From the IMG/VR virus record IMGVR_UViG_3300046542_000248, positions 1 to 64,000 of that record: a stretch of 64,000 nucleotides of DNA; one strand, given 5' to 3'. Both the position numbers and the translations under genes were made by a program. The notes below the pieces were generated by a model that saw only the letters and a list, made by a program, of their open reading frames with translations, was not told where the DNA came from and ran no database searches. Of this stretch, positions 8,265 through 54,827 are shown piece by piece (the stretch's first letter is position 1; each line of letters begins with the position of its first letter).

Positions 8265-8276
8265 GACATCTAATTA
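8265..8276 (+). promoter_or_regulatory. Putative late promoter (RACA-N6-TA)
   Basis: GACAtctaatTA about 27 nt upstream of a virion-type gene; one mismatch to AACA-N6-TA. Confidence 0.5.
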
Positions 8277-8302
8277 ATAAGACTATTGTAGGAGGTTTAT
8301 AA

Positions 8303-9574
8303 ATGCATATAGAATCTAAACTTAAGTTAATTATGGAAGGTCACTATGAAGAACTTGGACCTATTCTGAATGAAGCATATTATGGTGGGAATCCACAACT
8401 TGTAAAATGTGAAGAACTCTTTGCTAAAGCATTAGAGTCTAAAAGTGGCAGGCATGAAATAAAAGAAATTCAAAATATTCTTCAAAAGTTATTTAATTTC
8501 AAGAAACTTGTAATCTCGACTATCCCACTTAGTTTAGGTGCTACAATTCCAATTACAGTTTATAAATTTAAATTCATTAAAGAAGGTATTAAACTGGAAC
8601 GTACTAAAACTGGTGTTGCATTTAAAACTGAGGATGAAGTTGAGGCTGCAATGTTCTTGGATTTAAACATGATCAAACTGTTTAACATTACTCCAAGAGA
8701 AGCAATAGCAATTATACTTCATGAAATTGGACATTCGATGCAAATGATTCTTCCATCAGAGCAACTTGGAAATGCAATCGGTGCAATGAATTTTGTAACA
8801 AAAATATTCCCAATGCTTTTATTAAACATGTCAAAGACTAAAGATGGTAAAACTTATGCCGATGCATATGAGGATATGGATACGTTATATAATGATTTGA
8901 AAGATAGATTTGTTAAATATGAAAGAGATGTTCAGATCCAAGTTAAGAAATCAATATTCGTTGTACTTTCATTGGGTAATACTGCAATGGCATTAAAAAG
9001 ACTATGGGATGCATTTAAGGGAGATGTTGTAAAAAATATCGTTAAATCTGTTTTTAGTGGTATTGATACTAAAATTAAAATGGGTCTAGGTGTATTACGA
9101 TTACCTGCGTCATATAAAGCAGAACTCTTTGCTGATCATTTTGCAACTATATATGGTTATGGTCAAGATTTAACATCTGGCTTGGGTAAAGTTGTTAATA
9201 CAGTTAATGGAAGTATATTAAACAACGTATTATTTCGTTTAGCTAAATTACCATATAATATCATTGGTAGAGTATTAGATCCACATCCAAATGATTTAAC
9301 ACGTTTTAAAAGCATTATTACAACCCTTGAAACTGAATTGCAGAAAGATATAAACGAAGATATGTATGAGATCATCAAGAAAGATATTGATGCAGCAAAA
9401 CAAAACTTAGATGATTTCATAACTGAGATGAATAAACATAAGTTTAGAAATGCTGATATCATTGTCTTTAAGAAGATTATGGGATTACTTATGGATGGTA
9501 ATGATGATGTAAAGCATTTATTCTTTAATCTTAAACCAGAAGAAATTGAATACTTGGATACCTTGGAAAAATAA
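8303..9574 (+). CDS. Putative virion-associated zinc metallopeptidase (HExxH, M48/gluzincin-like)
   Basis: ILHEIGH, downstream ELFADHFATIYGYG (third-ligand E..AD motif), DPHP...R; N-terminal LNE|AYY processing-like site. Confidence 0.7.
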   Translation: MHIESKLKLIMEGHYEELGPILNEAYYGGNPQLVKCEELFAKALESKSGRHEIKEIQNILQKLFNFKKLVISTIPLSLGATIPITVYKFKFIKEGIKLERTKTGVAFKTEDEVEAAMFLDLNMIKLFNITPREAIAIILHEIGHSMQMILPSEQLGNAIGAMNFVTKIFPMLLLNMSKTKDGKTYADAYEDMDTLYNDLKDRFVKYERDVQIQVKKSIFVVLSLGNTAMALKRLWDAFKGDVVKNIVKSVFSGIDTKIKMGLGVLRLPASYKAELFADHFATIYGYGQDLTSGLGKVVNTVNGSILNNVLFRLAKLPYNIIGRVLDPHPNDLTRFKSIITTLETELQKDINEDMYEIIKKDIDAAKQNLDDFITEMNKHKFRNADIIVFKKIMGLLMDGNDDVKHLFFNLKPEEIEYLDTLEK

Positions 9575-9577
9575 TAA

Positions 9578-9610
9578 GAAGACATGAGGGATTTTCTCCT
9601 CATGTCTCTT
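9578..9610. terminator. Bidirectional terminator between convergent genes
   Basis: AGACATGAGG...CCTCATGTCT stem, T-run on + and A-rich flank. Confidence 0.7.
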
Positions 9611-9618
9611 TTTTTTTG

Positions 9619-11199
9619 TTAAAATTTAGCAACTCTTGAAAGGTTTTGGAATACGGGGATTCCGTCGCCAGGCTTCGGTTGCTTCGTCATTTGGTAGACT
9701 GTTTGGACGAAGTCCCTCTGAATGATTCTAGAGTTCTGTCCAATGAGCGTCATGATGTACTTCTTATCATTCATATATCTAGCAGCATCTTCATTGGCTT
9801 CTTCTGTAAGAGCGGCAGCCAGTGTAAGCATATCACCATCATAATCTCCACCCAATCCTGGTAGATAACTATTATGAACGTGAAGAGTATCAATAAATGA
9901 AATACTACTATTCTTATTGATCTCAATGTCTGGATAATAATCATAGTACTTATCACCAATCAATACAGATATAGTTTTCTTAGTAGTAAGAATAGTAAAT
10001 TTAGAAGGATTTACACCAAAGTTATCTTCAATTGGATAACGAGTGAAGTAAACGTGCTTTTCAGATAATCTGTCGTTACACACAATGAATAGGATATCTG
10101 TCCAAGTCAATGGGCGTGTTACAGAAGTTTGAGCTTGACCAAATCTTCCTGTCAAATATAGATTACCTTTTCTTCCTTCTTCATTTTCAGGAAGTTCGAT
10201 AGCTTTGAATCTGGAAGAAGTACCGTAGATGAACTTTTTGATCATCTTAATGATATATTCTTCAGAAGTATAATATTCGGGATTTGTTAATGTGAGATAC
10301 TCAACCTCACCTTTTTCATTCCTATATGGGTATTTACCCGATAGTTGGAATTCATTTTCTAAAAACTCTTTTACACCATGAATTACAAATGGCATAAAGA
10401 TAGCACAGATACTGGCAAGAGGAACACCAATTCGTCCAAATCTAACTTGAACTTGATCGTAAGTTTCTCCTCTGATAATTGGTGCAGAGATTACTAGTCG
10501 AGCACCTAAGTCTGTATTCTTACCCATTACAAACTTTTTAAAAGTACCATTCTTTGCTCTAAGTTGAGAATCAATGATTTGGTCATGAATCTCATTCAGA
10601 GTAAATTGGATACGAGCTTTGGAGATATTGGATGTTAGACCATATTGCGCTTGTTGAGTTACGCTGTTAACCTGACGAATAATGAATAGATATTTATCGT
10701 TCAATTCATCGTAAGAAGGACGTCCCTCTTCATTATAGTTTACATCACGATAGAAAGCAGGTAGAACGATCCAAGAAGATACCCAGGAGTTCTCTCTATC
10801 TGCTAAGTTCTTAATTCTTTCAGTAGCGAAGACCGACTTACGTTCTTTGAACTCAAGTTTATCCCAGTTATCATATAGGAAATCAAGCCCTGTTTCACCA
10901 TTAGGATCAGGAGTTAATTTCCCATTTTTAATGGAAAATGTCTGTGTTCCTGTAGCACAACTCTCGAAATTCCTATCTAATCGACTAAGATTATAGAACG
11001 TAAGAGGATGTAGATAATGTCCTTTTAAATCAATAAATGCTGGAATGTTCTGACGCTCATAAGAGGTTTGACCGAAGATTCCATAAGAGAATAGAGAATC
11101 ATCCGTTGGCAATCCTTTATCAATAGGAATTGGTCCAGAAACAGGTCTTAGCCCGTTAATAGCAACAACTCTATCAACCCGTGCTTTATGAAGTTTCAA
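9619..11199 (-). CDS. rpoC: Second phage RNA polymerase beta' N-terminal subunit, probably virion RNAP (vRNAP)
   Basis: LFSYGIFG, HYLHP, VLPAFYRD, MGKNTDLGARLVIS, FTRYP and catalytic LGGDYDGD; no Zn ribbon; co-transcribed behind an AACA-N6-TA promoter. Confidence 0.88.
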   Translation of the reverse strand: MKLHKARVDRVVAINGLRPVSGPIPIDKGLPTDDSLFSYGIFGQTSYERQNIPAFIDLKGHYLHPLTFYNLSRLDRNFESCATGTQTFSIKNGKLTPDPNGETGLDFLYDNWDKLEFKERKSVFATERIKNLADRENSWVSSWIVLPAFYRDVNYNEEGRPSYDELNDKYLFIIRQVNSVTQQAQYGLTSNISKARIQFTLNEIHDQIIDSQLRAKNGTFKKFVMGKNTDLGARLVISAPIIRGETYDQVQVRFGRIGVPLASICAIFMPFVIHGVKEFLENEFQLSGKYPYRNEKGEVEYLTLTNPEYYTSEEYIIKMIKKFIYGTSSRFKAIELPENEEGRKGNLYLTGRFGQAQTSVTRPLTWTDILFIVCNDRLSEKHVYFTRYPIEDNFGVNPSKFTILTTKKTISVLIGDKYYDYYPDIEINKNSSISFIDTLHVHNSYLPGLGGDYDGDMLTLAAALTEEANEDAARYMNDKKYIMTLIGQNSRIIQRDFVQTVYQMTKQPKPGDGIPVFQNLSRVAKF

Positions 11200-11215
11200 T
11201 TTAACTCACCTCGTA

Positions 11216-11464
11216 TTATGGTATAATTGCATCCTTACCCTCATCCTCTTCAATTGCACCAATACAATGATCTTTCTCAAAGAGGTTTAAAAATTTGCAA
11301 AGAAATCTACACATCCAACAGCTTGTATTATTACGTAAGTGTTTACCAAGTCTGCTACTAATAGTTTCATCAGGATCTCCACCCAAAATAGCGTTTGCTA
11401 ATTGGTCGATTCCAAATAATACATTCCAGATATACCGTATTAAAACTTGTTTGAATTTACTCAT
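11216..11464 (-). CDS. Small conserved phage protein (DQLANAILGGDPDETISSRLGK family)
   Basis: Widespread phage motif DQ..N...GG.PDETISSR.G plus C-terminal C..C...HC; AAAGGAG SD. Confidence 0.75.
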   Translation of the reverse strand: MSKFKQVLIRYIWNVLFGIDQLANAILGGDPDETISSRLGKHLRNNTSCWMCRFLCKFLNLFEKDHCIGAIEEDEGKDAIIP

Positions 11465-11499
11465 ATTATCCTGCTCCTTTCGACCAAGATTTAATTAAT

Positions 11500-11511
11500 T
11501 ATCTGGGTGTT
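11500..11511 (-). promoter_or_regulatory. Putative late promoter AACA-N6-TA
   Basis: Minus strand reads AACAcccagaTA, 35 nt upstream of the 11464 start. Confidence 0.6.
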
Positions 11512-11536
11512 TCCATCATCAAAAGAAAAAAAAAAT

Positions 11537-11562
11537 AAGATAGAGGATTTCTCCTCTATCTT
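11537..11562 (-). terminator. Intrinsic terminator (GAAA loop)
   Basis: Minus strand AAGATAGAGGA-gaaa-TCCTCTATCTT then long T-run. Confidence 0.75.
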
Positions 11563-11566
11563 GCTC

Positions 11567-18310: not shown

Positions 18311-18322
18311 TAATTTTGTGTT
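18311..18322 (-). promoter_or_regulatory. Putative late promoter AACA-N6-TA (leftward, baseplate operon)
   Basis: Minus strand AACAcaaaatTA. Confidence 0.65.
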
Positions 18323-18334
18323 TTCTATATAGAA

Positions 18335-18346
18335 AACAGCCAATTA
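18335..18346 (+). promoter_or_regulatory. Putative late promoter AACA-N6-TA (rightward)
   Basis: AACAgccaatTA; back-to-back with the leftward copy. Confidence 0.65.
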
Positions 18347-18375: not shown

Positions 18376-19737
18376 GTGAAATGTCCAATTTGCAGGAAAC
18401 CTATTCAATATAAAAAGGATATGATTCATCATCTCCATTTAAGACATGCAAGAGAACTTCCTGAGAATGTGAGTCCGGCAAAGTTTCTATTCTCTTCAAC
18501 CCATGGTGGAAGAACTGGTGGCTCTTGTCGAGTATGTAACAGTGAAACTTTATTCGATGAGAAAATCGGTAGACCTAGAGTATTTTGTACTAATCCTAAA
18601 TGTAAAGAGGCATTTGCCACTATTGCACAATCCAGGAACATAGAGAAATATGGAGTTCCACATCTATTAAACAACCAAAAACATCAGATGTTTATGCTTT
18701 CTAAAAGAAAGATCTCTGGTGAATATGATTGGTCTGATGGAAGAACTAAGATTCCATACGTTGGATCTTATGAAAGAAAATTTTTTGAGTTCTTAGATAA
18801 CTTCATGGATTTCGATCCATCGGTAATTCATTCCCCATGTCCTTTTGATATTCAATATGAATTTGAAGGTGAAATGCATACGTATACACCTGATGTTTAT
18901 ATTGATATCGTTGATCTCGTCGTTGAGATTAAACATGGTGGTGACAATCCTAATAATCATCATAAGATTCAAGCTGTTGATGTAGCTAAGGATAAAGCTA
19001 AGCAGGAAGCTATTAAAAAATCCACTAATCACAATTTCATTAAGATTGTGGATAATAAATTCGGACCTTTCCTCAAAGCAATGTTTAAATTAGTAGAAGA
19101 TGAAAAGTATGAAAGCAAACAAAGATTGTTTGTGATTAATGAATCTTCTCAAACTATAGCTGCTATAAGAGAAGCAGCCTCATCACCTCCACTTACTGGG
19201 ATTCCTGTTGCCCCTAAAGCTGATCCTGATTCTAGATATAATACACAGGTTTCTGTGAATATGTTCACTGCACTGGGTGGAGCTGCAAAATGTCCATCTA
19301 TGAAAGAAACTCAATCTCTTGCTAGTATTCATCCAATAGTCACTGGCTTTATTGGTCGAGAGATTGACGGTAATGAAAAGCCACTCTATATTACAGTATT
19401 TAATGATAGCAGTGATAATTACACAATTGGTGTAGCTATTGATCGCATGCGTGATCCTGCAATATATGAAAATAGTAAATTTATAACTTTTCTAGGTTCA
19501 GGTGATAGATTGGATGGTCAGGATTACTCAGTCTATAAGTATATTGGCAACGGTAATTATGATGAAAAACAATTCCTTAAAGCCTGTTATGAAACTACTG
19601 AACATCCATATGGTTCAGATGTAGAGGCATTTACTACTATATTAGAATCCGTATTCAAAAGACCTTTATATAATGTGGGTCAATTACTTATGAATCCAGA
19701 ATTCGTTAAAATTAAACAAGGAAGGGTTGAATACTAA
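18376..19737 (+). CDS. C2H2/C4 zinc-finger plus PD-(D/E)xK (TnsA-like) nuclease fused to a C-terminal domain of unknown function
   Basis: CPIC..HLHLRH, CRVC, CTNPKC; GSYERKF...YTPDVY...VVEIK; INE|SS and IRE|AA sites separate the halves. Confidence 0.7.
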   Translation: MKCPICRKPIQYKKDMIHHLHLRHARELPENVSPAKFLFSSTHGGRTGGSCRVCNSETLFDEKIGRPRVFCTNPKCKEAFATIAQSRNIEKYGVPHLLNNQKHQMFMLSKRKISGEYDWSDGRTKIPYVGSYERKFFEFLDNFMDFDPSVIHSPCPFDIQYEFEGEMHTYTPDVYIDIVDLVVEIKHGGDNPNNHHKIQAVDVAKDKAKQEAIKKSTNHNFIKIVDNKFGPFLKAMFKLVEDEKYESKQRLFVINESSQTIAAIREAASSPPLTGIPVAPKADPDSRYNTQVSVNMFTALGGAAKCPSMKETQSLASIHPIVTGFIGREIDGNEKPLYITVFNDSSDNYTIGVAIDRMRDPAIYENSKFITFLGSGDRLDGQDYSVYKYIGNGNYDEKQFLKACYETTEHPYGSDVEAFTTILESVFKRPLYNVGQLLMNPEFVKIKQGRVEY

Positions 19738-22174: not shown

Positions 22175-23095
22175 TTATGCAACTGATTTTTTGATTCGCA
22201 GCAAGAAGGACTCACTGCATCCAAATTCACCAATGATATCAATATTTCTAATACCTTCTATGATTCTGGATTTTATAGCATCAATAGTTTCAGTGTTATA
22301 TCTATTATTCTCTTTGACTGGATTTTTAATATCAAATCTACTAGAGATTCCTTTATATTTCTTACCCAAATATACGGAAGATAGAATCTTTTTGAATGAT
22401 CGTCTGTAGGACATCTCTATTTGTAATGAGATACAAATTCCTTCATAACTCCAATTATCTTCTTCCATAAGTTTACAGGATCTTTCTATAATGTCTTTAC
22501 TAGCAATATTATCTCTGAATTTGATAGGTTCAGAGTTTTTAGCAACTCTTTTATATTTAGTCAGGATAGAACTATACTTAATATTCTTATCCACAGACAT
22601 TAGAATTTCAAATTTCTTATAGTCGGTATCTTTATCATATCCCAATTCTCTTAGGATGGTATGATAATTCCACGGTTTCATCATTAACGACCCAATCTTG
22701 TGAACTTCACCTTCTGTAAATCCTGCTTTATTTCTTTTAGATAATGCAGCATAGGTCACATCAGAATCTGACGCCCATTTAAGATTATGAGAGAAGTTAT
22801 TAGATTTATCACCATCAATATGAAGGACTTGATTAAAATTGTTTGGGTTTTTAATAAATGCCAAGGCAACTAATCTATGGAGTCCTCTATACGTCTTATT
22901 GAATAAACCTTTCTCCTCTAGTTGGACTCTCTCATATCCTCGATCATTTCTGTTGGATTGAATATATTTATCAGAATCTTTATCCAAGATTCGTCCGTAA
23001 GTAGAGATTACATAACGAGCACTTTTAACTAATATTCCATCAATATCCAAGATTAATGGTTTAACACATTCTTTACGCCTAAAAACTTTTATCAT
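22175..23095 (-). CDS. Free-standing HNH homing endonuclease
   Basis: GLHRLVALAFIKNP...VLHIDGDKSNN...NLKW (HNH_3 type) with helical C-terminal repeats; oriented opposite to its neighbours. Confidence 0.85.
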   Translation of the reverse strand: MIKVFRRKECVKPLILDIDGILVKSARYVISTYGRILDKDSDKYIQSNRNDRGYERVQLEEKGLFNKTYRGLHRLVALAFIKNPNNFNQVLHIDGDKSNNFSHNLKWASDSDVTYAALSKRNKAGFTEGEVHKIGSLMMKPWNYHTILRELGYDKDTDYKKFEILMSVDKNIKYSSILTKYKRVAKNSEPIKFRDNIASKDIIERSCKLMEEDNWSYEGICISLQIEMSYRRSFKKILSSVYLGKKYKGISSRFDIKNPVKENNRYNTETIDAIKSRIIEGIRNIDIIGEFGCSESFLLRIKKSVA

Positions 23096-28020: not shown

Positions 28021-28032
28021 TACATATTATTA
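28021..28032 (+). promoter_or_regulatory. Possible late-type promoter (TACA-N6-TA variant)
   Basis: TACAtattatTA, 20 nt upstream of the CDS. Confidence 0.4.
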
Positions 28033-31128: not shown

Positions 31129-31527
31129 TTGAGTAGCCCGCTTATAGTGTTCGATACTCGATTCGGAAACGTGAGAAGATTTGTTAAGAAGCTAGGGATG
31201 AGAGCTGTCTTCCTTAGAGAAGTTGAGAAAGTGGAAGAACCGTATATACTTATTACTTATACTGATACGTTTGGAACTGTTCCAATTACAACTCAGAATT
31301 TTTTACATAATAACAGCCAACTTCTTCTTGGTGTAGCATCAAGTGGTAATAGAAGATGGCATGAAACATACTGCAAAGCAGCAGATGTAATTTCAGATGA
31401 ATACGGAATACCTGTCATTTCCAAGTTTGAATTATCAGGGAATGTCGATACAATAAAATCATTTATCGAAAGGGTTGGTCAAATTGACTACAGCGTCATT
31501 AGAAAACATGAATTACTACGAGCTTAA
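31129..31527 (+). CDS. nrdI: Class Ib ribonucleotide reductase flavodoxin NrdI
   Basis: GNVRRFVKKL...EPYILITYT...G.VP...LLGVASSGNRRW...KFELSG. Confidence 0.95.
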   Translation: MSSPLIVFDTRFGNVRRFVKKLGMRAVFLREVEKVEEPYILITYTDTFGTVPITTQNFLHNNSQLLLGVASSGNRRWHETYCKAADVISDEYGIPVISKFELSGNVDTIKSFIERVGQIDYSVIRKHELLRA

Positions 31528-33805
31528 TAATAGTATTATGCTCAAAGATGAGGATGGCTTCTTGCGTCTTGATAATGACAAGCTTGCCATTGTAAAATAT
31601 CTTGAATACGTGGATGAAAACCGTTTGAAGTTTACAAACGTTGTTCAACGTATGAAATACCTTGTTGAGCAGCATTCAGTCGTTAAAAAGACGATGGATG
31701 TAGAAAAAATCATCGGCTATCTTGAAAAGATAAAAGTGGATATATCAGATCCATACTATTCTAAAATACTTGATGATGTTATGGCTAATCTTCCTGAAGA
31801 ATGTTTTATGGAAGAAACCACTCTTCCATTCTATGATAAAAATATTATTGCTAAGTATACCGATGAGCAGATCGTCGAGTTACATACATTAGCTTCCGAT
31901 TATCAATTCAATTATAAAACTTTTATGCAAGCATACAAATTCTATGAAGATTATGCCCTTAAGAGTGATGACAAAAAAACATTCTTGGAAACTTTTGAAG
32001 AGCACAATGTTATCGTTTCTATGTATCTTGGAAATGGTGATTATGAAAAAGCAAAAGAATTCTTAGCTTCTTTTATGGAGCAACGAGTACAACCTGCAAC
32101 TCCAACATATCTAAATGCTGGTAGAGCACGTCGTGGTGAAATGGTAAGTTGTTTCTTACTTGCACTTGATGATTCTACTGAATCTATTCAACACAATCTT
32201 ACTAACATGGCTAATCTTAGTCGTATTGGTGGTGGGGTTGCATTTGATGTAAGTAACCTTCGTGCATTCGGCGATCCAATCATGGGTGTTGAAGAAGCAG
32301 CAAAAGGTCCTTTACATGTATTGCTTATTGCTGAAAGAATCTTCTCTTTCTATGATCAACTCGGTCAACGTTCTGGTAGTGGAGCAGGTTATATTAACGT
32401 ATTCCATCCAGATGTAAATATGGTAATTGACTCCAAGAAAGAAAATGCTGATGATGCTACTCGTCTGAAATCATTGTCTCTTGGATTAACTGTACCACAG
32501 AAGTTCTACGATCTTGCAGAAGCAGATCTAGACTTCTACGGATTCAGTCCTTACGATGTGAAGAAATACTACGGTATGGCATTCACAGAAGTTGATTTCG
32601 ATATCTTCTATGATCTATTCATGATGGATGATCGTATTAGAAAAACTAAGATTATGAGTGCTCGTGCATTCCTTAACAAGATTGCTCAAGTTCAACTCGA
32701 ATCTGGTTATCCTTATATCTTCAATATCACTAATGCTAATAAACAGCATGCTCTTAAAAACGAAGGTCGAATTTTGATGACTAATCTTTGTACTGAAATT
32801 ATGCAGTTGCAAGAAGTTTCAAAAATCGGCAGATACTTCGAGCAAGATGATATTCGACGTGATATTTCTTGTAACCTTGATTCAATCAATATTACTAACA
32901 CAATGCTAAGCAGAGATATTGCTGGTACTGTATATACTGCAATGGATGTAGTTACAGCAGTATCAGATTTTACAAGAATCAGTACAGTTCCAGGTGTACT
33001 TAAAGCCAATGATGAAATGCATTCAGTTGGCGTTGGGGCAATGGATCTTAATGGTTATCTTGCTAAAAATATGATCAAGTATGAATCATTCGAAGCTCGT
33101 GACTTTGCAAGAACTTTCTTCATGATGATGAACTTCTACAGTTTGAAGCGTTCATGTGAAATTGCAAAAGAACGTGGTATTACATTCAAAGGATTCAAAG
33201 GTTCTGAATATGATACAGGTGTATATTTCACTAAGTATCGTAACAAAAACTATGCTCCTTTATCTGCTAAAGCAATTGCACTATTTGAAGGAATCTACAT
33301 TCCTACTCCTCAAGATTGGATCGAACTTGAAGCAGATATCAAAGAACATGGTTTATACCATGCTTATCGCTTAACAATCGCTCCTACTCAAAGTATTAGC
33401 TATGTACAGAATGCTACGAGTTCTGTAATGCCGATTATCGACGTTGTCGAAATTCGTTCGTACAAAAAAGGTAAGATCTTCTATCCAGTACCTCATTATT
33501 CCCGTGAGAATAAATGGTATTATAAATCTGCTTATCAAATGGATCAAAGAGCAGTTATTGATATGATTGCTGTAATCCAAGAGCATATTGATCAAGGCAT
33601 TAGCTGTATCTTACATGTAAACAAAGATGTAGCTACTGGTGATCTTGCAGGTCATTACCTTTATGCCAATTATAGAGGTTTGAAATCTCTTTACTACACT
33701 AGGACTAACCGTCCTAAGCAAGAAAAAATTAAAACAGGCATTCGCAGAGTTATGAGACAGGTTGAATCGGATAACGAACCTGGCTGCGTATCCTGTAGCG
33801 TATAA
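31484..33805 (+). CDS. nrdE: Class Ib ribonucleotide reductase alpha subunit
   Basis: QPATPTYLNAGR, VSCFLL, GGGVA, TNLCTEI, APTQSISY, GLKSLYYTR, C-terminal CVSC; start uncertain (31484 TTG or 31508 ATG). Confidence 0.95.
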   Translation: MTTASLENMNYYELNNSIMLKDEDGFLRLDNDKLAIVKYLEYVDENRLKFTNVVQRMKYLVEQHSVVKKTMDVEKIIGYLEKIKVDISDPYYSKILDDVMANLPEECFMEETTLPFYDKNIIAKYTDEQIVELHTLASDYQFNYKTFMQAYKFYEDYALKSDDKKTFLETFEEHNVIVSMYLGNGDYEKAKEFLASFMEQRVQPATPTYLNAGRARRGEMVSCFLLALDDSTESIQHNLTNMANLSRIGGGVAFDVSNLRAFGDPIMGVEEAAKGPLHVLLIAERIFSFYDQLGQRSGSGAGYINVFHPDVNMVIDSKKENADDATRLKSLSLGLTVPQKFYDLAEADLDFYGFSPYDVKKYYGMAFTEVDFDIFYDLFMMDDRIRKTKIMSARAFLNKIAQVQLESGYPYIFNITNANKQHALKNEGRILMTNLCTEIMQLQEVSKIGRYFEQDDIRRDISCNLDSINITNTMLSRDIAGTVYTAMDVVTAVSDFTRISTVPGVLKANDEMHSVGVGAMDLNGYLAKNMIKYESFEARDFARTFFMMMNFYSLKRSCEIAKERGITFKGFKGSEYDTGVYFTKYRNKNYAPLSAKAIALFEGIYIPTPQDWIELEADIKEHGLYHAYRLTIAPTQSISYVQNATSSVMPIIDVVEIRSYKKGKIFYPVPHYSRENKWYYKSAYQMDQRAVIDMIAVIQEHIDQGISCILHVNKDVATGDLAGHYLYANYRGLKSLYYTRTNRPKQEKIKTGIRRVMRQVESDNEPGCVSCSV

Positions 33806-33816
33806 GGAGATAAACA

Positions 33817-34983
33817 ATGACAACCACAACTGATTCAATTATCTTAAACGCCCAAGGTGTTCTACAATATACCGAAGAAAATCCATTCGCTGCTGTAAAC
33901 TGGAACGAACCAGATGATGATTATACCAAAGATATTATCGACACTTCACTATCTGCTTTCTGGCATGACCAACGTCTAATCTTCAGTGATGATGCATTGG
34001 ATTGGAAAAACATGACTGATGATCAGCGTGGAACTTACATGCATGTATTCGGTGGATTAACCCTACTTGATACTAAACAATCCTCTATCGGTATGACTAC
34101 TATTTCTATTCTTGCAGGAAATGAACAACGTCGGATGGCGTTTAATAACTTCGCATTTATGGAAAGTATTCATGCTAAGATGTACAGTTCAGTATTTACA
34201 ACACTTCTTTCCCGTGAGCAAATTAAAGATGTATTTGCTTGGATCAAAGAAAATCCTTATCTTCAAAAGAAAGTATCTATTATTGAAGCTTACTATAGAA
34301 GGGCGTTGCAAGTATATGTCTCAAATTTTAAATTCGATGCGCGGTCTTTTTATCTCTGCTTGGCTTGCTCAGTCATGCTTGAGAGTTTCCTCTTCTATTC
34401 AGGATTCTTCTATCCGTTATACCTTTCCGGACAAAAAACAATGCGGGCAAGCGGAGAAGGAATCGGCTTAATCTGTCGTGATGAAGCAATCCACGGATTG
34501 TATACAGGAGCAGTAGCTCAAGAAGTATTTGAGTTGATTCCTGAAGAGGAGCAGCAAGATGTACTTGATGAGGTAATGAGAATCTTTACGGTATTGATGG
34601 ATAACGAGGTTGAATATACTACAGATTTGTACACTAAACTTGGTCTAGTTGACGAGGTAGTTACATTCCTTAAGTATAATGCAAACTTGGCTTTCCAAAA
34701 CTTGGGACTTGAAGATCCATATCCTGAGATCACTGAGAATAGTGTAAACCCTGTAGTCCTGAATGGATTAAGTCAAGCGACTGTTCAACAAGACTTCTTC
34801 TCTGGTGGTGCAGGTGGTATCGGTAATGGTTACTCTATTGCAATGAACGTTAGTCCAGTAACTGATGAGCATTTCAAATTTAACAAAGTTGATGAATTTG
34901 CTGAGTATGAGAAATCCTTCAAACCAGATCCTGAAGCTGATGAGGCTCTCAGAACTTTAAATGCACTGTTACCTGATGCTTAA
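33817..34983 (+). CDS. nrdF: Class Ib ribonucleotide reductase beta subunit
   Basis: AVNWN, GGLTLLDT.Q, MESIHAKMYS, LESFLFYSGF, RDEAIHG. Confidence 0.95.
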   Translation: MTTTTDSIILNAQGVLQYTEENPFAAVNWNEPDDDYTKDIIDTSLSAFWHDQRLIFSDDALDWKNMTDDQRGTYMHVFGGLTLLDTKQSSIGMTTISILAGNEQRRMAFNNFAFMESIHAKMYSSVFTTLLSREQIKDVFAWIKENPYLQKKVSIIEAYYRRALQVYVSNFKFDARSFYLCLACSVMLESFLFYSGFFYPLYLSGQKTMRASGEGIGLICRDEAIHGLYTGAVAQEVFELIPEEEQQDVLDEVMRIFTVLMDNEVEYTTDLYTKLGLVDEVVTFLKYNANLAFQNLGLEDPYPEITENSVNPVVLNGLSQATVQQDFFSGGAGGIGNGYSIAMNVSPVTDEHFKFNKVDEFAEYEKSFKPDPEADEALRTLNALLPDA

Positions 34984-35050: not shown

Positions 35051-35064
35051 AAATATATATTATT
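35051..35064 (+). promoter_or_regulatory. Putative early promoter
   Basis: AAATATATATTATT. Confidence 0.7.
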
Positions 35065-36691: not shown

Positions 36692-37432
36692 ATGAAAGAA
36701 AATGAAAAATATATAGGTTATAAACCACCACAAATATTAGATGAGGGTGCTAGAGCAGTTGCACATGGTACACAAGGTGGTGTAATTTTTACAGGTAATC
36801 CTGAAGCAGATCCACTATTCAATAAAACTATCTATGATCCGTATCCATTTACAGTTCCTGTTGGTATAAAAAGAATCAATCCTGAAGCTGAAATTCCTGT
36901 CTATAATAAGCGGGGAGATTCAGGATATGATCTTGTCGCTATGGAAGATGTGATTATTCTTCCTGGTGAAACTGCTTTAATTCCAACTGGATTAGCATTT
37001 GAAACTCCACTAGGATTAGAAGTTCAAATTCGTCCTAGATCTGGATTAAGTGCTAAGACTAAATCTCGTGTAACTTTAGGTACTGGTGATTCTAATTATC
37101 GTGGTGAACTTAAAGTTAACATGGATAATATCACTCAGATACGATGGGAATTTAATCAAAAGGAGCAATCAGTTGTGATGCAAACTAGTGATGAACTAGT
37201 AACTTTGGAGAATTATCCTGTCAGCATTCATGATATTGATCCTTTAACTAAGGGTCTTATTTATGAAGATGGCGATCTTCAGGAAATTCCTGTAGGTTCA
37301 ATCATTGTATTTAAAGGACAACGTGTTGCTCAAGGTGTACTTGCTTCTGTGTGGAAAGGTATTTTCACTGAGAAAGAAGTTCTATCTGAAACAGAACGTG
37401 GTACTACAGGATTTGGTCATACTGGCGTTTAA
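36692..37432 (+). CDS. dut: Trimeric dUTPase with a long insertion between motifs III and IV
   Basis: Five motifs: GDSGYDL, QIRPRSGLS, GTGDSNYRGE, GQRVAQG, ERGTTGFGHTG. Confidence 0.93.
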   Translation: MKENEKYIGYKPPQILDEGARAVAHGTQGGVIFTGNPEADPLFNKTIYDPYPFTVPVGIKRINPEAEIPVYNKRGDSGYDLVAMEDVIILPGETALIPTGLAFETPLGLEVQIRPRSGLSAKTKSRVTLGTGDSNYRGELKVNMDNITQIRWEFNQKEQSVVMQTSDELVTLENYPVSIHDIDPLTKGLIYEDGDLQEIPVGSIIVFKGQRVAQGVLASVWKGIFTEKEVLSETERGTTGFGHTGV

Positions 37433-38737: not shown

Positions 38738-38749
38738 AACAGCTTATTA
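38738..38749 (+). promoter_or_regulatory. Putative late promoter AACA-N6-TA
   Basis: AACAgcttatTA, 28 nt upstream of ATG 38778. Confidence 0.65.
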
Positions 38750-38777
38750 AGACCAACAATTGGAGGATGATAAACAA

Positions 38778-40519: not shown

Positions 40520-40531
40520 TACGGTGGTGTT
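40520..40531 (-). promoter_or_regulatory. Putative late promoter AACA-N6-TA
   Basis: Minus strand AACAccaccgTA. Confidence 0.55.
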
Positions 40532-41977: not shown

Positions 41978-41989
41978 AACACACAGATA
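41978..41989 (+). promoter_or_regulatory. Putative late promoter AACA-N6-TA
   Basis: AACAcacagaTA upstream of the tail gene block. Confidence 0.65.
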
Positions 41990-42029: not shown

Positions 42030-45000
42030 ATGAGAGCTAATGAAGATATTTATAAACGAATATACACTAAAACTCTAGTACGGAAAAATGAACTAAGTAA
42101 AATCAATAATCTCAGAACAAACGTGTTTCCCTCTAGTGTAATTGAGACAGATTCATATCTCGATTTCGGTAAATCTAAAAAGAATCTTCTACCTAGTAAT
42201 AGTGCTGTAGTATATCTCTATGAGGATGTACTAAATGATAAGGCATTACTAGATAGAAAGTCCATTGTACCACACACTGTGTATAAACTTACTGATTTTG
42301 GAGTAAGAACTAAAGTAGGTATGATAATATCTGATGAAACTGGATTAATTGATCCAGATCTTGTTAGCGTATACGTTACTGATATGAATACACTGGTATT
42401 TATGATCAATAAAGACACATCTGTTTATATTTCAATTATCTATTTAAAGGGTGTATTGATGTATGCCAGATATAATAACAACGTGGATGTTCCTATTCCA
42501 GCGAGTTATAAAAACTCATTTGTCGTATGGACTAAACTTGACAATTCTCCTAGTGGAGCAGTTGAATGGATTGATCCGGTTCTTAATAATGGTCAATATT
42601 ATATTCCCATCAGAGCACAAGGTAAGTTCTCATTACTAATGCTTTCTGATACTTTCAAATTCTATAACATCATTCCCCAAACTAATAGCCAATATAGTTA
42701 TATTAAATTCCCTGATGAAATTGGTTATACTGATTTAAATAACGTGTTTATGTGGAGAAATAGAAGCATTGGATTTAGCCAGCCGATTGGTCATACTCCA
42801 CTATATGATGGATTTAAAGTAGAAGGTGTTACAAGAACATCTCTTACTCTTAATGGTACTACCGGTTATGTTTCCTTTGGATCATATCCTTCTCGCAGTG
42901 AGCTAACAATTCATATCAAATTTAAGATCAATGCATTTGGTGATCTCGCTCGTGTTATTCAACGGGGTAATTCTGATGGATTTGGATGGTGTCTTCGTAC
43001 CACTACAGATAATCGAATAGCATTCCAATTTAAGAAATATGATATTCTTAAGAATATCACTTCTAATCCTTTAACTGCTAATACATGGTATAGCATGACT
43101 ATAACTGCTGCTACTGGCGAAGTACCTACAATGTACGTCAATAGTATTCAGCAACCTAGTAATTTTATTGATAATAGTGCAAGTGATAGTGGTACTGATT
43201 TCCTTGTCTTAGGTAGACGTGCAAATGCTAGTCAAGACTACACATCTATAGATATTGATTTTGTCCGTATTTATAATAGGAAATTGAAATTCTCTGAGGT
43301 ATTGGATGGATATAATTCTATTTATCCTTCTACTGGAATGGTAAATGAATGGCTATTTGATGAGAATACTGGAGCCACTCTTAATGATACTAAAGGATCA
43401 AACCCTGGAACTATTTCTGGCGGAACTACATGGGTTAATGGTCCAGATAATACAGTTGGAAGACTTGTAGGTTTCTCCAAACGTATTGAATATACTTCAA
43501 AGTATGCTGATCTTCGTCATCAGTATAATAAATTTAATGACTACATGACTCAGTATTTAGCTAATACACTACCTGTATTCATTAAGAATTACACTCCTTA
43601 TGTGCCTAATATTACTTTAGATACTCTTACATCTGATTTTCAGGATAGAATGGTATTGGCTTCCAAAGACTATCCTAATATTGTGAAAGAATATCTCGAA
43701 GAAACTGAAAGTATTAAGTTTACTGACTATGTTACTACAGATATAAATCCTATTTATACCCGAGCTAATACAGCTACAAGTGTAGATGGTACTTATTCTG
43801 TAATTGCTACTGATACTCCTAGATATGTTAAAGATAGTAATCCTATGAAAAAAGGTATTATTATTGAAGATATTGTCAATAATAAAATGCCTGATCCGTT
43901 ATTCAATACACCAGTTGCATTAATAGCTGCTGGTATATCGAATCCAACTGTTTGGACTGTGAATTATACTGCCACTGTTCAAACTACAGTAGTTGTAGCA
44001 AATAATGTATTGCGACACACTGGATTTAATAATAACAGTAACTCAATCAGATTGACTTCTCCTTCATTCACTGTGGATAAGACTAAACCTCTTACTATCC
44101 AATTCAAAGTGAAATATATTAAAAACACAGGTACTAATCAGCTATATGGATTTGGAACTGTTACCAATGGTGTAGAAGTTTTATTAGATAGCTTCTTATT
44201 CACATCATATGTAGATGCTGACGGATTTACCTATAAAGAATATCGAATTCCTGCAAATACATTCACAGGATCTGGAACTTCAATTAATATTGGATTCTGG
44301 GGTGGATGGAATACTTACGAGGAAAAAGATTATTATCTTAAAGAAGTTCAAGTTACTGAACTTGGTTATGGTGGATTAACATTTACTGCCGTAAATAAAG
44401 CTGCCGATTTTCTTAGAGTACCATCTCCAAATGTTTTAAATCCAACGGTAGGGACTCTTGAAATTTGGTATACTCCAAAAGTAGTTACTGATCGTGCACT
44501 ACTTCAAACTAATGATTCAAACGTTGCTACAAAGTTTGCTGTTAGAATACAAGCTGATGGTTCTGTGATGTTCTCTAATGCAGGAAATGATACTGCCGCT
44601 AAACGCATAGTATCTGCTGCTGGTTTAATTACTGCTAGAAATGTACATTACATCGTAATGGCATGGGAAAATAAAACTCTATATGCGTATATTAATGGGG
44701 TATTAATTGGGTCATTAGTGACTGTTTCTGATGCTATTATTAAAGATCTCTTACACATTGGTGCTGATGTCAGTGCTAACTATGTAAATGGTATTATCCA
44801 TGATTTTAGAGCCTCCAATACTAGAAGATCTCTTGCTGAGATTCAAGCTGCTTATACTGCAAAAACAGCATTAGCTGTGGATGCAAATACTACAATGAAG
44901 TTAAACTTCGATGAAACTATTAAACCTCCTAATACCGTGATACACTCACTTAAACTTGTGACAAATCACGATTTAAGAAAACGTTTATTATTCATAAACG

Positions 45001-46136
45001 GTCTAAACATTTCTCCAGCATCAGCTACTTATAATGTCCCTACTAGAAAATGGACATCTTCATTTAGAGCTAATGATGTTAAAGGATCTAAAATTACTGA
45101 AGTTGACACTGGAATGACGAAAACTCCATACTATGATAGTAAAATTATCAGTCAACAAGCTACAGTATTTGGGCCATCTACTAAAATTACATCTGAACTA
45201 TTATTCGATGTATTTGAACTTGATACTCCAGCAGATTCACTTGGTACTATTACTATAATGGACCCAAGTAAATATACTTACACAATAGCTGAGAATATTA
45301 TTAAGTTTAATTTCAATTCTGATAGAATTGGCAAATCTATTTATGTCTGCGAGAAACGCTACAATCAATTTATCTTTGAAGGTTATAGCAATGATGGCTT
45401 ACTTCAAAAACTACCTACATGGATAAGCTTCCTTCCTAAAGAGAAGATGTTAATATTCTTAAATGGTAGACTTCTTGAAAAAGAAAGATACTATCTATTT
45501 GATCCTTTTAGATATCAAGTTCTTAAAGGTGATACAGTATTAGTCACAGATTTGGATACCAATACCATAGATGGTGAAATATTCAATGGGTATTTTACAT
45601 CTAGACTTGAATTGGCTGAATATAATGTGACACTAACTGATGGTGCTCAAATTGTCGCACTTAATGATAAGAGTTTCCCATTCTCTAAGAAATACAATCT
45701 TGTATTTGTAGATGGTAAACTTATTCATCCTGATGATATTAAAGAGATTGACAACTACAGATTCTCTGTTAAAACCACATCTACTAATAATATGTGTGTA
45801 TTTAGAAGACGTATGGATCTTGCTGGAAGAGAGAAATTCTCTGGAGTAAAAGATAAATGGACTGAATATCTTGAAACTTTAACAACTCCTCAAATAGCTA
45901 CACTACTTGGGACTCTTAACACCGTTGTTACTGGTGAAAATAATTCAAGATCAGTCTTTTTAGCTGAACGTCATTTATTTGAAGTATTGTATTATTATTG
46001 CTTAAAGGGAAGAGATCATTTGACTGATAATGATAATATTCGAATCCCTATTGAACTTCCTGGAACTATGTTATCTGATGGTCGTATTCCTATTTCAACT
46101 ATGAGAGCTGGGTTATATCCTCGTTATCAGTTATAG
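42030..46136 (+). CDS. Large virion (baseplate/tail) protein with inserted LamG/concanavalin-A-like domains
   Basis: Two LamG signatures (LTIHIKFK...WYSMTIT...MYVN...IDFVRIYNRKL; GTLEIWY...HYIVMAW...YINGV...IHDFRAS); repeated L.F.NG.L motifs. Confidence 0.75.
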   Translation: MRANEDIYKRIYTKTLVRKNELSKINNLRTNVFPSSVIETDSYLDFGKSKKNLLPSNSAVVYLYEDVLNDKALLDRKSIVPHTVYKLTDFGVRTKVGMIISDETGLIDPDLVSVYVTDMNTLVFMINKDTSVYISIIYLKGVLMYARYNNNVDVPIPASYKNSFVVWTKLDNSPSGAVEWIDPVLNNGQYYIPIRAQGKFSLLMLSDTFKFYNIIPQTNSQYSYIKFPDEIGYTDLNNVFMWRNRSIGFSQPIGHTPLYDGFKVEGVTRTSLTLNGTTGYVSFGSYPSRSELTIHIKFKINAFGDLARVIQRGNSDGFGWCLRTTTDNRIAFQFKKYDILKNITSNPLTANTWYSMTITAATGEVPTMYVNSIQQPSNFIDNSASDSGTDFLVLGRRANASQDYTSIDIDFVRIYNRKLKFSEVLDGYNSIYPSTGMVNEWLFDENTGATLNDTKGSNPGTISGGTTWVNGPDNTVGRLVGFSKRIEYTSKYADLRHQYNKFNDYMTQYLANTLPVFIKNYTPYVPNITLDTLTSDFQDRMVLASKDYPNIVKEYLEETESIKFTDYVTTDINPIYTRANTATSVDGTYSVIATDTPRYVKDSNPMKKGIIIEDIVNNKMPDPLFNTPVALIAAGISNPTVWTVNYTATVQTTVVVANNVLRHTGFNNNSNSIRLTSPSFTVDKTKPLTIQFKVKYIKNTGTNQLYGFGTVTNGVEVLLDSFLFTSYVDADGFTYKEYRIPANTFTGSGTSINIGFWGGWNTYEEKDYYLKEVQVTELGYGGLTFTAVNKAADFLRVPSPNVLNPTVGTLEIWYTPKVVTDRALLQTNDSNVATKFAVRIQADGSVMFSNAGNDTAAKRIVSAAGLITARNVHYIVMAWENKTLYAYINGVLIGSLVTVSDAIIKDLLHIGADVSANYVNGIIHDFRASNTRRSLAEIQAAYTAKTALAVDANTTMKLNFDETIKPPNTVIHSLKLVTNHDLRKRLLFINGLNISPASATYNVPTRKWTSSFRANDVKGSKITEVDTGMTKTPYYDSKIISQQATVFGPSTKITSELLFDVFELDTPADSLGTITIMDPSKYTYTIAENIIKFNFNSDRIGKSIYVCEKRYNQFIFEGYSNDGLLQKLPTWISFLPKEKMLIFLNGRLLEKERYYLFDPFRYQVLKGDTVLVTDLDTNTIDGEIFNGYFTSRLELAEYNVTLTDGAQIVALNDKSFPFSKKYNLVFVDGKLIHPDDIKEIDNYRFSVKTTSTNNMCVFRRRMDLAGREKFSGVKDKWTEYLETLTTPQIATLLGTLNTVVTGENNSRSVFLAERHLFEVLYYYCLKGRDHLTDNDNIRIPIELPGTMLSDGRIPISTMRAGLYPRYQL

Positions 46137-46138: not shown

Positions 46139-46150
46139 AACAAATTATTA
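46139..46150 (+). promoter_or_regulatory. Possible late promoter AACA-N6-TA
   Basis: AACAaattatTA; followed by a strong hairpin at 46157-46183, so function is uncertain. Confidence 0.4.
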
Positions 46151-46156
46151 GAATAT

Positions 46157-46183
46157 GGAGAAGATCTAGTTCGGATCTTCTCC
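46157..46183 (+). terminator. Hairpin (terminator or 5' leader stem)
   Basis: GGAGAAGATC-tagttcg-GATCTTCTCC, short T-run. Confidence 0.5.
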
Positions 46184-46203
46184 TTTAACTCCAATGAGGG
46201 ACG

Positions 46204-54311: not shown

Positions 54312-54370
54312 ATTATTACGTATTTAACTATCTATAAATCCCATCCCATAAACGAGGAGTTGTTATTTTC

Positions 54371-54748
54371 ATGAGTCATAATCATCACTTTTTCACGAAT
54401 CAAAGTATTCACACTTTAAACGATTGTATTGATACTGCAATGCGTCAAAATGGTATTGATGTTCTGCAAGATATTAATGCAGTATTGTATGAATTTACAA
54501 ATAACGTGGCTTCGGTTGAAGCTAACCACGACAAAGTTATTGCTCTTACACCGGCAGTTGCCGAAGTGGTTAAATCATTTGCAGATCTACACTTGAAAGT
54601 TAAAGGTGCTGCGGTAATCAAAGCAGTCGGGGTTATTCTTGATACAATTGATAATCCTCTTGCACCACCGCAACCGCAAGAACCGGTAGAAGAAGCTGCC
54701 CAAGAAGAAGTTGTTGAAGCAGCTGCTAGTCCCGAATCACAACAATAA
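54371..54748 (+). CDS. Small protein in the tail fibre cluster (possible chaperone/accessory)
   Basis: GAGGAG SD, 125 aa, high-expression-like codons, own terminator. Confidence 0.7.
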   Translation: MSHNHHFFTNQSIHTLNDCIDTAMRQNGIDVLQDINAVLYEFTNNVASVEANHDKVIALTPAVAEVVKSFADLHLKVKGAAVIKAVGVILDTIDNPLAPPQPQEPVEEAAQEEVVEAAASPESQQ

Positions 54749-54756
54749 ACCAATTA

Positions 54757-54789
54757 ATCAGGAAGAGTCTAAAAAGGCTCTTCCTGGTT
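54757..54789 (+). terminator. Intrinsic terminator
   Basis: AATCAGGAAGAG...CTCTTCCTGGTT plus T-run. Confidence 0.75.
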
Positions 54790-54815
54790 TTTTGTTTGTC
54801 AACTTTATATTATGA

Positions 54816-54827
54816 AACATCAAAATA
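54816..54827 (+). promoter_or_regulatory. Putative late promoter AACA-N6-TA
   Basis: AACAtcaaaaTA, 40 nt upstream of the CDS. Confidence 0.6.

Follow-up and report, generated by a model that had tools for sequence, protein, structure and literature searches.

Can a phage whose genes point to ordinary thymine DNA use the late promoter of a phage whose polymerase demands uracil? This question arose from a 64,000-nucleotide window, the whole stretch analysed (positions 1 to 64,000 of IMG/VR record IMGVR_UViG_3300046542_000248), which belongs to an uncultured soil (rhizosphere) jumbo phage with a 246,901-bp genome of 35% GC. The original prediction held that AACA-N6-TA, the late promoter of the uracil-DNA Bacillus phage AR9, precedes structural or late genes in a phage that encodes an intact dUTPase. 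It proposed that the phage probably has thymine DNA and that the specificity subunit of its non-virion RNA polymerase (nvRNAP) would read T where AR9 needs U or, alternatively, that dUTPase activity is timed or inhibited. We found that the observation is correct. The interpretation was supported by every computational test available to us, although this support is indirect.

The late-promoter motif and its placement

To test whether the motif is present as described, we examined each site and its downstream gene. All seven sites listed as strong are exact matches. Of the three listed as weaker, 46139 is also an exact match, whereas 8265 and 28021 are one-mismatch variants.

11500..11511 (−): late (nvRNAP-type) promoter AACA-N6-TA, intergenic and in sense orientation, 47 nt before the start of the operon 11464->9619, which includes the virion-RNAP beta'-N homolog
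18311..18322 (−): late promoter for the minus-strand operon 18282->15652, sharing a 20-bp perfect palindrome (18319-18338) with the divergent promoter at 18335
18335..18346 (+): late promoter for 18376-19737, the ortholog of the AR9 g233 endonuclease, which also has the motif in AR9 and in the relative G005
38738..38749 (+): late promoter for the virion structural protein gene 38760-39737 (ortholog of AR9 g281), with the motif conserved in AR9 and in the relatives G003 and G005
40520..40531 (−): late promoter for 39777-40481(−)
41978..41989 (+): late promoter for the 1368-aa ORF 42030-46136, with the motif conserved before its orthologs in the relatives G002 and G003
54816..54827 (+): late promoter for the tail-fibre-like 1263-aa ORF 54867-58658
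8265..8276 (+): one-mismatch variant (GACA-N6-TA), 38 nt before 8303-9574; a possible weak late promoter
28021..28032 (+): one-mismatch variant (TACA-N6-TA), 32 nt before 28053-29132 (AR9 g220 homolog); a possible weak late promoter
46139..46150 (+): exact copy 65 nt before 46204, running straight into a terminator-like hairpin; doubtful as a promoter, as is a further site at 58687 that had not been listed

Because a motif with only six specified bases has appreciable background in AT-rich DNA, a comparison with shuffled sequence had been proposed in advance. The raw count did not exceed chance: the window contains 30 hits against 75.7±8.3 expected from shuffles, so the motif is depleted overall, and part of the depletion in coding regions is generic to all spacings. 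What is non-random is where the motif lies. In the whole genome, 44 of 136 hits fall in the 7.1% that is intergenic, a 6.3-fold higher density. We found that 35 of 250 genes carry the motif in sense orientation within 80 nt of the start, against 11.7-12.0±3.3-3.5 in Markov-1 simulations (maximum 26 of 500 in one set and 21 of 200 in another), whereas the antisense count is 14 and the reversed-pattern count is 10. This enrichment is specific to the N6 spacing, as N3-N5 and N7-N9 gave only 7-15 genes. Positions that were not fixed in the search also carry information, giving the logo aAACA-N5-W-TA-A.

To determine whether the motif behaves as the AR9 late promoter, we applied the same test to AR9 as a positive control and to three relatives of the phage. 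AR9 gave 68 genes against 15.4±3.8, and G002, G003 and G005 gave 24 against 7.7, 26 against 10.2 and 50 against 15.8, so that the motif is equally enriched in the relatives. The motif also co-occurred at orthologous genes, with odds ratios of 7.9 against G002 (p 2e-4), 13 against G003 (p 8e-6), 4.4 against G005 (p 0.018) and 5.7 against AR9 (p 0.013); 11 of 15 motif-bearing genes with an AR9 ortholog also carry it in AR9, in which the promoter was mapped experimentally (PMC5312081). The targets include tail sheath, tape measure, vRNAP beta, virion proteins, terminase and prohead protease. In AR9, transcription starts at the last base of the T(A/G) element; only DNA runs hold the present sequence, and transcript 5′ ends were not mapped. 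The start-site element here is TAA, with A after TA in 73% of sites against 33% in AR9. Given the specificity for spacing and orientation, the conservation at orthologous genes in four other genomes and the informative flanking positions, we consider it very unlikely that the motif is mere background of AT-rich intergenic DNA.

Polymerase subunits and early promoters

We next asked whether the phage encodes the machinery that reads this promoter in AR9. Homologs of all four split beta/beta' core subunits of nvRNAP (AR9 g270, g154, g105 and g089) and of the virion RNAP (vRNAP) subunits are present, although protein identity to AR9 is only 21-48%. The RNAP genes are not interrupted by introns or homing endonucleases. 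A search of the rest of the genome for a gp226-like specificity subunit, which had been named as a test, identified a homolog at genome 207245-208759 (phmmer E 1.6e-22) that is syntenic with the g227 and GroEL homologs, as in AR9. A profile of this clade matched the AR9 structure 7S01_A at E 3.9e-52, and an AlphaFold model (pLDDT 77) had 7S01_A as its top Foldseek hit at E 3.8e-16, followed by phiKZ gp68 (8QUE_B, the third-best structural match, E 2.5e-7). Phage phiKZ is a thymine-DNA jumbo phage with a homologous five-subunit nvRNAP, but it uses a different late-promoter consensus (TATG), whereas this phage keeps that of AR9. The phage also has AR9-type early promoters with the core TATATTAT. 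Late and early motifs are almost mutually exclusive (39 late, 44 early, 1 both).

1803..3320 (+): nvRNAP beta'-N subunit homolog (AR9 g270), behind an early promoter core at 1202
9619..11199 (−): virion RNAP beta'-N subunit homolog (AR9 g145)
35056..35063 (+): AR9-type early (vRNAP) promoter core TATATTAT, 50 nt before 35106; the nearest same-strand promoter motif upstream of the dUTPase (35106-36065, 36308-36688, 36692-37432)

Nucleotide-metabolism genes

To examine whether gene content fits a thymine or a uracil genome, we first confirmed the dUTPase.

36692..37432 (+): trimeric-type dUTPase of 246 aa with all five catalytic motifs intact (GDSGYDL, RPRSG, GDSNYRGE, GQRVAQ and RGTTGFGHTG), a 56-aa N-terminal extension and a roughly 57-aa insertion between motifs III and IV; an independent contig spans it without any difference
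31129..34983 (+): NrdI-NrdE-NrdF class Ib ribonucleotide reductase genes (38-48% identical to AR9 g224-g222); in AR9 the dCTP deaminase Dcd follows NrdF, but here no deaminase follows it

The dUTPase matched PF00692 (E 5.8e-20), phrog_135 (E 1e-48) and the NCBIfam dUTP diphosphatase equivalog NF001862 (116.7 bits against a cut-off of 103). It is a xenolog, about 32% identical to the relatives' enzymes but 44-49% identical to Duts of temperate Bacillus/Paenibacillus phages, so the function was kept through a gene replacement. The genome-wide search for a thymidylate synthase suggested by the original prediction returned a candidate flavin-dependent enzyme, ThyX, which scored 69.5 bits against a Pfam cut-off of 24.8. 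This protein is atypical: it is 401 aa long, its RHR motif lies only in the C-terminal half, it falls below the NCBIfam thyX equivalog cut-off (43 against 88 bits) and it had no PDB hit by simple sequence search, so the scores leave its assignment to the family undecided. In G002, however, a bona fide ThyA above the thymidylate synthase equivalog cut-off occupies the identical genomic slot. The dUTPase and the candidate ThyX both lie in predicted early operons.

By contrast, we did not detect genes of the dU-DNA pathway. PF00383 gave no hit at E≤1, indicating that there is no member of the dCMP-deaminase family that includes Dcd. Neither phmmer nor tblastn found a homolog of the dTMP phosphatase Dtm (AR9 g151) at E≤10, and there was no PF06941 hit, although a very divergent analogue cannot be excluded. 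The uracil-DNA glycosylase inhibitor (UGI), for which a search had likewise been proposed, gave no homolog of the AR9 protein even at E≤10; as such inhibitors are small, evolve fast and have several unrelated folds, this absence does not settle whether the phage has one. Five dU phages (AR9, BpSp, LPJP1, S6 and phiR1-37) showed the opposite profile, with Dcd in 5/5, dUTPase in 0/5 and ThyX in 0/5. All five relatives whose genomes we retrieved, none of which has valine at the pocket position described below, have a dUTPase, and the four complete ones also have ThyX or ThyA.

One alternative is that the phage still packages uracil DNA, with the dUTPase inhibited, separated in time from replication or serving a moonlighting or signalling role. 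All cultured members of this phage group are dU phages, PBS2 induces a dUTPase inhibitor (PMC12697855), phage trimeric dUTPases can have signalling roles, and the staphylococcal-phage-like insertion and N-terminal extension of this dUTPase could indicate a non-metabolic role. However, the predicted early operon, the undetected dU pathway genes, the candidate ThyX here and the thymidylate synthase genes in all four complete relatives, and the replaced uracil-discriminating valine all disfavour this reading, which we consider improbable. The phage and several relatives were also assembled to full length from ordinary metagenome libraries, whereas dU DNA is reported to be poorly recovered by standard library preparation, but this point is weak because the library method is unknown. 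A second alternative is that the DNA carries a C5-substituted pyrimidine, such as a post-replicative thymidine hypermodification. Jumbo and Bacillus phages often modify thymidine (PMC5889632, PMC8989533), many ORFs in this genome have no known function, and a glycine in the base pocket would accommodate any C5 substituent. Modification genes were not searched for systematically and this possibility is not excluded, but it is unlikely, as known hypermodification routes start from 5-hmdU made by a ThyA-family dUMP hydroxymethylase and this genome has no ThyA-family gene.

The −10 base pocket and a proposed thymine-reading polymerase

A comparison of the uracil pocket had also been named as a test of the idea. 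In AR9 gp226, the side chain of V206, in the 2.1bis helix, excludes the thymine methyl at −10, and the engineered V206G mutant holoenzyme uses −10U and −10T promoters equally well in vitro (Fraser et al. 2022, PMC9209446). We found that this valine is invariant in seven dU-phage orthologs but is glycine (G233) in this phage and in 13 relatives, which was confirmed by pairwise and profile alignments with high posterior probability. Other gp226 changes are I207 to M, Y210 to R, F261 to G and Y263 to D, and on the other face of the pocket beta-N Y-R363 becomes N-Y only in the G clade. The relationship is not universal, or the alignment fails at this distance: G003 and the sequences P0014/P0015 read D-G-R-M-W, with R rather than G in the aligned column, and the distant dUTPase-bearing relatives G004 and G005 align P and I within a divergent helix. 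Moreover, the link between V206 and dU gene content rests on a single branch of the beta-N tree (support 93/95), and is thus one independent contrast. Together with the dUTPase, the candidate ThyX and the undetected dU pathway genes, the loss of V206 argues, by proxy only and without biochemical assay, against the AR9 requirement for template-strand deoxyuridine at −11 and −10. The dU phages S6/MarsHill (Staphylococcus), LPJP1 (Listeria) and phiR1-37 (Yersinia) belong to the same RNAP and gp226 lineage, and they and the AR9/PBS1-type Bacillus phages are the only cultured relatives detectable with beta-N or gp226; S6/MarsHill, LPJP1 and phiR1-37 all keep V206 and a Dcd and lack dUTPase and ThyX.

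The pocket changes might instead be incidental, if the conserved AACA, which contains no T or U, were read mainly on the non-template strand. The AR9 gp226 N-terminal domain has pockets that bind the non-template AACA-like segment (PMC9209446), and the non-template groove residues S245 and Y246 are also changed here, to N and L. We regard this as unlikely, because AR9 nvRNAP initiates specifically on single-stranded template DNA with specificity defined by the template strand, and because the substitutions cluster on both faces of the template −10 pocket (V206, I207, Y210 and beta-N Y-R363), which looks like adaptation of that pocket rather than drift.

The explanation that we favour, with a probability of roughly 0.7, is that the phage represents a deep sister lineage of the AR9/PBS1, S6, LPJP1 and phiR1-37 group that runs the AR9 two-polymerase programme on thymine DNA. 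In this model, an injected virion RNAP reads early promoters (AAATATATATTAT), and a five-subunit nvRNAP reads AACA-N6-TA(A), most likely starting at the A of TA. Early expression of the dUTPase and ThyX would remove dUTP and make dTMP, the template-strand element would be 3'-TTGT-5' rather than 3'-UUGU-5', and the −10 pocket would have been remodelled to fit, with G233 removing the side chain that would clash with the C5 methyl. Our data establish the motif statistics, the conservation of the motif at orthologous genes, the gene content and the residue substitutions, whereas thymine in the virion DNA, the transcription start position, the role of G233 in allowing T to be read and the way in which the −11 thymine is accommodated are inferences; neither base composition nor enzyme activity was measured, and sequence data do not distinguish U from T. 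In AR9 the −11 uracil is also obligatory, and it is excluded by the DNA backbone rather than by V206, so G233 alone cannot explain reading of TTGT. A broader reading, which we consider somewhat more likely than not, is that this clade is a natural record of a genome-wide switch between U and T inside one phage lineage, in which the base-reading pocket co-evolved with genome chemistry through V206G plus compensating changes on both faces while the promoter stayed fixed. If so, AR9 and this phage offer a ready-made pair of orthologous RNA polymerases for dissecting how a protein distinguishes U from T, and dU genomes could be gained or lost without rewiring the transcription programme.

AR9 nvRNAP, its gp226 subunit and its late promoter AACA-N6-T(A/G) are already described (PMC5312081, PMC5449584, PMC9209446), and it is the only RNA polymerase known to demand deoxyuridine in its template-strand promoter, a demand relaxed by the single substitution V206G. 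That mutant is a laboratory construct in a dU phage background and does not address the −11 position. Here the change is natural, fixed across a clade of at least 14 sequences and accompanied by further pocket substitutions and a thymine-type nucleotide metabolism, which turns a laboratory observation into an evolutionary one. It points to further residues relevant to the still unexplained −11 position (Y210R, F261G, Y263D and beta-N Y-R363 to N-Y), and gives a simple sequence marker for predicting dU or T genomes from metagenomes, namely V or G in the D-x-[V/G]-[I/M]-W motif together with Dcd or Dut/Thy gene content. These findings extend the AR9 group beyond its cultured, all-dU members and suggest how a phage can change its DNA chemistry while keeping about 40 late promoters unchanged.

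The phage genome and its two promoter motifs

The 64-kb window is the first quarter of a 246,901-bp IMG/VR virus record, which CheckV rates as 100% complete and which has a GC content of 35%. To look for close relatives, we compared 10 kb with 50,697 phage records by megablast and found no match, so no close cultured relative exists at the nucleotide level among these records. A search for related loci with the single protein found only one relative, whereas an alignment query reached six. At the protein level, 52 of about 250 ORFs match Bacillus phage AR9 at 21-48% identity (no alternative genetic code was used). These include homologs of all four split beta/beta' subunits of the non-virion RNA polymerase (nvRNAP) and of the virion RNAP (vRNAP) subunits, among them the following:

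Window 1803-3320, nvRNAP beta'-N homolog
Window 9619-11199, virion RNAP subunit homolog
Genome 142858-144936, nvRNAP beta-C homolog
Genome 150133-152004, nvRNAP beta-N homolog
Genome 173220-175337, nvRNAP beta'-C homolog

The RNAP subunit genes (window 1803-3320 and 9619-11199; genome 86807-90961) are uninterrupted ORFs, whereas in AR9 several are split by introns with homing endonucleases. A free-standing HNH gene at window 22175-23095(-) resembles the AR9 intron-encoded endonuclease g271. The second-best conserved protein shared with AR9, after NrdE, is encoded at window 5725-6288 (46% identity to g174, a small P-loop 'AAA family ATPase'). It has no confident family assignment and is a candidate nucleotide kinase, which is of note because the phage dUMP/dNMP kinase gene of PBS-type phages has not been identified.

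To test whether AACA-N6-TA behaves as a late promoter, we first examined the sites listed in the original prediction. All of them exist, with those at 8265 and 28021 being one-mismatch variants, and the observation that the motif precedes structural or late genes holds. Enrichment against shuffled intergenic sequence had been proposed in advance as a check. The raw count is below chance (30 hits in the window against 75.7±8.3 expected) and would have misled. By contrast, the placement of the motif is significant. Genome-wide, 44 of 136 hits lie in the 7.1% of intergenic DNA, and 35 of 250 genes have a sense-strand copy within 80 nt of the start, against about 12±3.5 in Markov-1 simulations, 14 for the antisense orientation and 10 for the reversed pattern. 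The enrichment exists only at the 6-nt spacing (35 genes, against 7-15 for N3-N5 and N7-N9), and unconstrained flanking positions are informative, giving aAACA-N5-W-TA-A. We also asked whether depletion of the motif inside genes is a signature of selection against spurious promoters. N6 is the most depleted spacing (observed/expected 0.52 sense, 0.41 antisense), but other spacings are also depleted (0.6-0.85), so most of the effect is generic and we do not lean on it. The same pipeline applied to AR9, in which this motif was mapped by dRNA-seq as the late promoter with its last base as the start site (PMC5312081), gave 68 genes against 15.4±3.8, and three metagenomic relatives fetched whole gave 24 against 7.7, 26 against 10.2 and 50 against 15.8.

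The motif also recurs in front of orthologous genes, with odds ratios of 7.9 (p 2e-4) and 13 (p 8e-6) against the close relatives G002 and G003, 4.4 (p 0.018) against the relative G005 and 5.7 (p 0.013) against AR9. The genes concerned are orthologs of AR9 tail sheath, tape measure, vRNAP beta and several virion proteins, plus terminase and prohead protease. In the window they include virion structural and tail-fibre-like proteins. The tail-fibre-like 1263-aa ORF at 54867-58658 has short internal matches to HNH-endonuclease and unknown PHROG families around residues 570-840, which are weak and unexplained. A search for RNA-seq or metatranscriptome runs containing the sequence found only two rhizosphere metagenome DNA runs, so no start-site evidence is available. 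In logos made from whole genomes, the start element of the dUTPase-bearing phages (G000, G002, G003 and G005) is TAA, with A after TA in 73-89% of sites against 33% in AR9, which may be a subtle difference in start-site preference. At window 18319-18338, a perfect 20-bp palindrome, TGTTTTCTATATAGAAAACA, holds the AACA elements of two divergent late promoters (18311 minus strand and 18335 plus strand), such that each AACA is the reverse complement of the other promoter's upstream flank. Similar back-to-back late promoter pairs occur at genome 80581/80607, 116533/116551 and 155004/155051. Two exact motif copies, at window 46139-46190 and 58687-58730, overlap or directly precede terminator-like GC-rich hairpins that follow the long ORFs ending at 46136 and 58658, and are probably not promoters.

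A second motif, the AR9 early-promoter (virion RNAP) core TATATTAT (extended form AAATATATATTAT), lies at these window positions:

1202, 14432(-), 14991(-), 23178(-), 23199, 23907, 25389, 26106, 35056 and 41874(-)

The raw count of this core in the window is at chance (15 against 14.3), and only its placement and orientation are informative: genome-wide it precedes 44 genes in sense orientation against 10 in antisense. It is almost mutually exclusive with the late motif (39 late, 44 early, 1 both). The AR9 two-class transcription programme is therefore conserved.

dUTPase and pyrimidine metabolism

The ORF at 36692-37432 encodes a trimeric-type dUTPase of 246 aa (PF00692 E 5.8e-20) that scores above the NCBIfam equivalog cut-off. 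All five motifs are present, with a 56-aa N-terminal extension and an insertion of about 57 aa between motifs III and IV. In an assembly check with 5,901 nt, one 118-kb Logan contig spanned the dUTPase block without a single difference, so the region is not an assembly chimera, although this contig probably comes from the source sample and is a second assembly of the same reads rather than independent data. The dUTPase is only about 32% identical to those of G002 and G003, which are 50% identical to each other, but is 44-49% identical to dUTPases of temperate Bacillus and Paenibacillus phages, and is thus a xenolog. It sits in an 8.3-kb block specific to this phage (29145-37432), which also contains NrdI/E/F and several unknown ORFs and is inserted between two genes (28053-29132 and 37503-38732) whose orthologs are adjacent in G002. 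In G002 and G003 the dUTPase instead lies a few genes downstream of the ThyA or ThyX. The function has therefore been retained through a gene replacement. Given the affinities of the dUTPase, the class Ib Nrd genes and the strong GGAGG ribosome-binding sites, soil Bacillus or Paenibacillus-type Firmicutes are the obvious candidate hosts.

The original prediction had named a thymidylate synthase and a UDG inhibitor as genes to seek in the rest of the genome. We found a ThyX-family protein at genome 177868-179073 (13868-15073 of L011, a locus outside the window), which scores 69.5 bits against a Pfam cut-off of 24.8. By contrast, we found no ThyA, no dCMP-deaminase-family protein, no homolog of AR9 Dtm or UGI even at E≤10, no phage-encoded UDG (PF03167) and no NT5C-type nucleotidase (PF06941) in the genome. 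The ThyX is atypical: at 401 aa it is about twice the usual size, and its N-terminal half matches most of the Pfam profile but has N-N-E where RHR is expected, the RHR signature being in the C-terminal half. It may be a fused pseudo-dimer, and it had no PDB hit by phmmer. Orthologs of 394-418 aa occur in G003 and in another relative, G001. In G002, a ThyA lies exactly where ThyX lies in this phage and in G003, between the same two orthologous genes, and scores above the thymidylate synthase equivalog cut-off (154.8 against 108 bits). We interpret this as an in-situ non-orthologous displacement, which supports a thymidylate synthase role for the atypical ThyX.

PBS1-type dU-DNA synthesis needs the deaminase-family Dcd, the phosphatase Dtm, a dUTPase inhibitor and UGI (PMC12697855). 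To compare gene content directly, we tested five dU phages (AR9, BpSp, LPJP1, S6 and phiR1-37) and found Dcd in 5/5, dUTPase in 0/5 and ThyX in 0/5. Five metagenomic relatives of this phage showed the opposite: dUTPase in 5/5, ThyX in two, ThyA in two, and a deaminase only in the most distant one. The nearest upstream promoter motifs of the dUTPase operon (35056) and the ThyX operon are of the early type. Early expression of both enzymes is what a thymine-DNA phage needs, and it is what a dU phage must avoid.

The promoter-specificity subunit

A gp226-like subunit, and a comparison of its uracil pocket with that of AR9, had also been set out beforehand as points to examine. The gp226 homolog (genome 207245-208759, 504 aa) lies next to the g227 and GroEL homologs, as in AR9. 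A profile of its clade matched the solved AR9 gp226 (7S01 chain A) at E 3.9e-52, and its AlphaFold model (pLDDT 77) retrieved 7S01_A first and phiKZ gp68 next. A homolog 64% identical to it (P0006) is deposited at NCBI as a protein of a 'Chitinophagaceae bacterium' MAG, on a contig of about 200 kb that is most likely a jumbo phage contig binned with a bacterial genome.

Fraser et al. (PMC9209446) showed that the obligatory -10 uracil is buried between gp226 I207 and beta-N R363, that its C5 atom lies 3.9 Å from the C-beta of V206, so that a thymine methyl would clash, and that V206G makes the enzyme accept -10T, the valine being invariant in homologs from dU phages. In pairwise, multiple and profile alignments anchored by the invariant D204 and W208, we found that AR9 D-V-V206-I-W-T-Y corresponds to D-S-G233-M-W-K-R in this phage. 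All seven dU-phage orthologs have V, whereas this phage and 13 metagenomic relatives have G, together with Y210R, Y246L, F261G and Y263D. On the other face of the pocket, the 'Y-R363' dipeptide conserved in all five dU phages is 'N-Y' in the G clade. However, the -11 uracil of AR9 is excluded by the DNA backbone rather than by V206, so G233 cannot be the whole story, and the accompanying substitutions are only candidates. In addition, G003-type sequences read D-G-R-M-W, and the very distant G004, G005 and P0016 homologs have P, I or S in the aligned column. Their helix is too divergent for residue-level inference, which we abandoned; either the alignment fails there or other solutions exist. 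A beta-N tree placed all V-type dU phages on one side of a single branch (support 93/95) and all dUTPase-bearing phages on the other. The correlation is therefore one independent contrast, explained by one switch between U and T; a rooted direction for this switch was not attempted, because no outgroup could be aligned reliably, and its direction is unknown.

Relation to the AR9 system

The system works like the AR9 nvRNAP-gp226-late-promoter system and by homology belongs to the gp226/gp68 family. It fails the feature that defines the AR9 promoter mechanism, dependence on template deoxyuridine, although this failure is judged by proxy. No measurement of base composition, start sites or activity is available. 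In the searchable literature, V206G appears only in the Fraser et al. paper and its preprint, and we found no description of a thymine-type member of the AR9 group or of AACA-N6-TA promoters outside dU phages. The only cultured relatives detectable with beta-N or gp226 are the same 21 dU-type records. We therefore regard this phage as a new natural variant that, judged by proxy, differs from the AR9 system in this dependence. The inference of the original prediction, that the phage probably has thymine DNA yet keeps the same promoter and that its specificity subunit would read T where AR9 needs U, is supported, and it is sharpened by the V-to-G finding. Because the early core TATATTAT is likewise conserved in this presumed thymine-DNA phage, early promoter recognition, like late, appears to be unchanged across the U/T divide.
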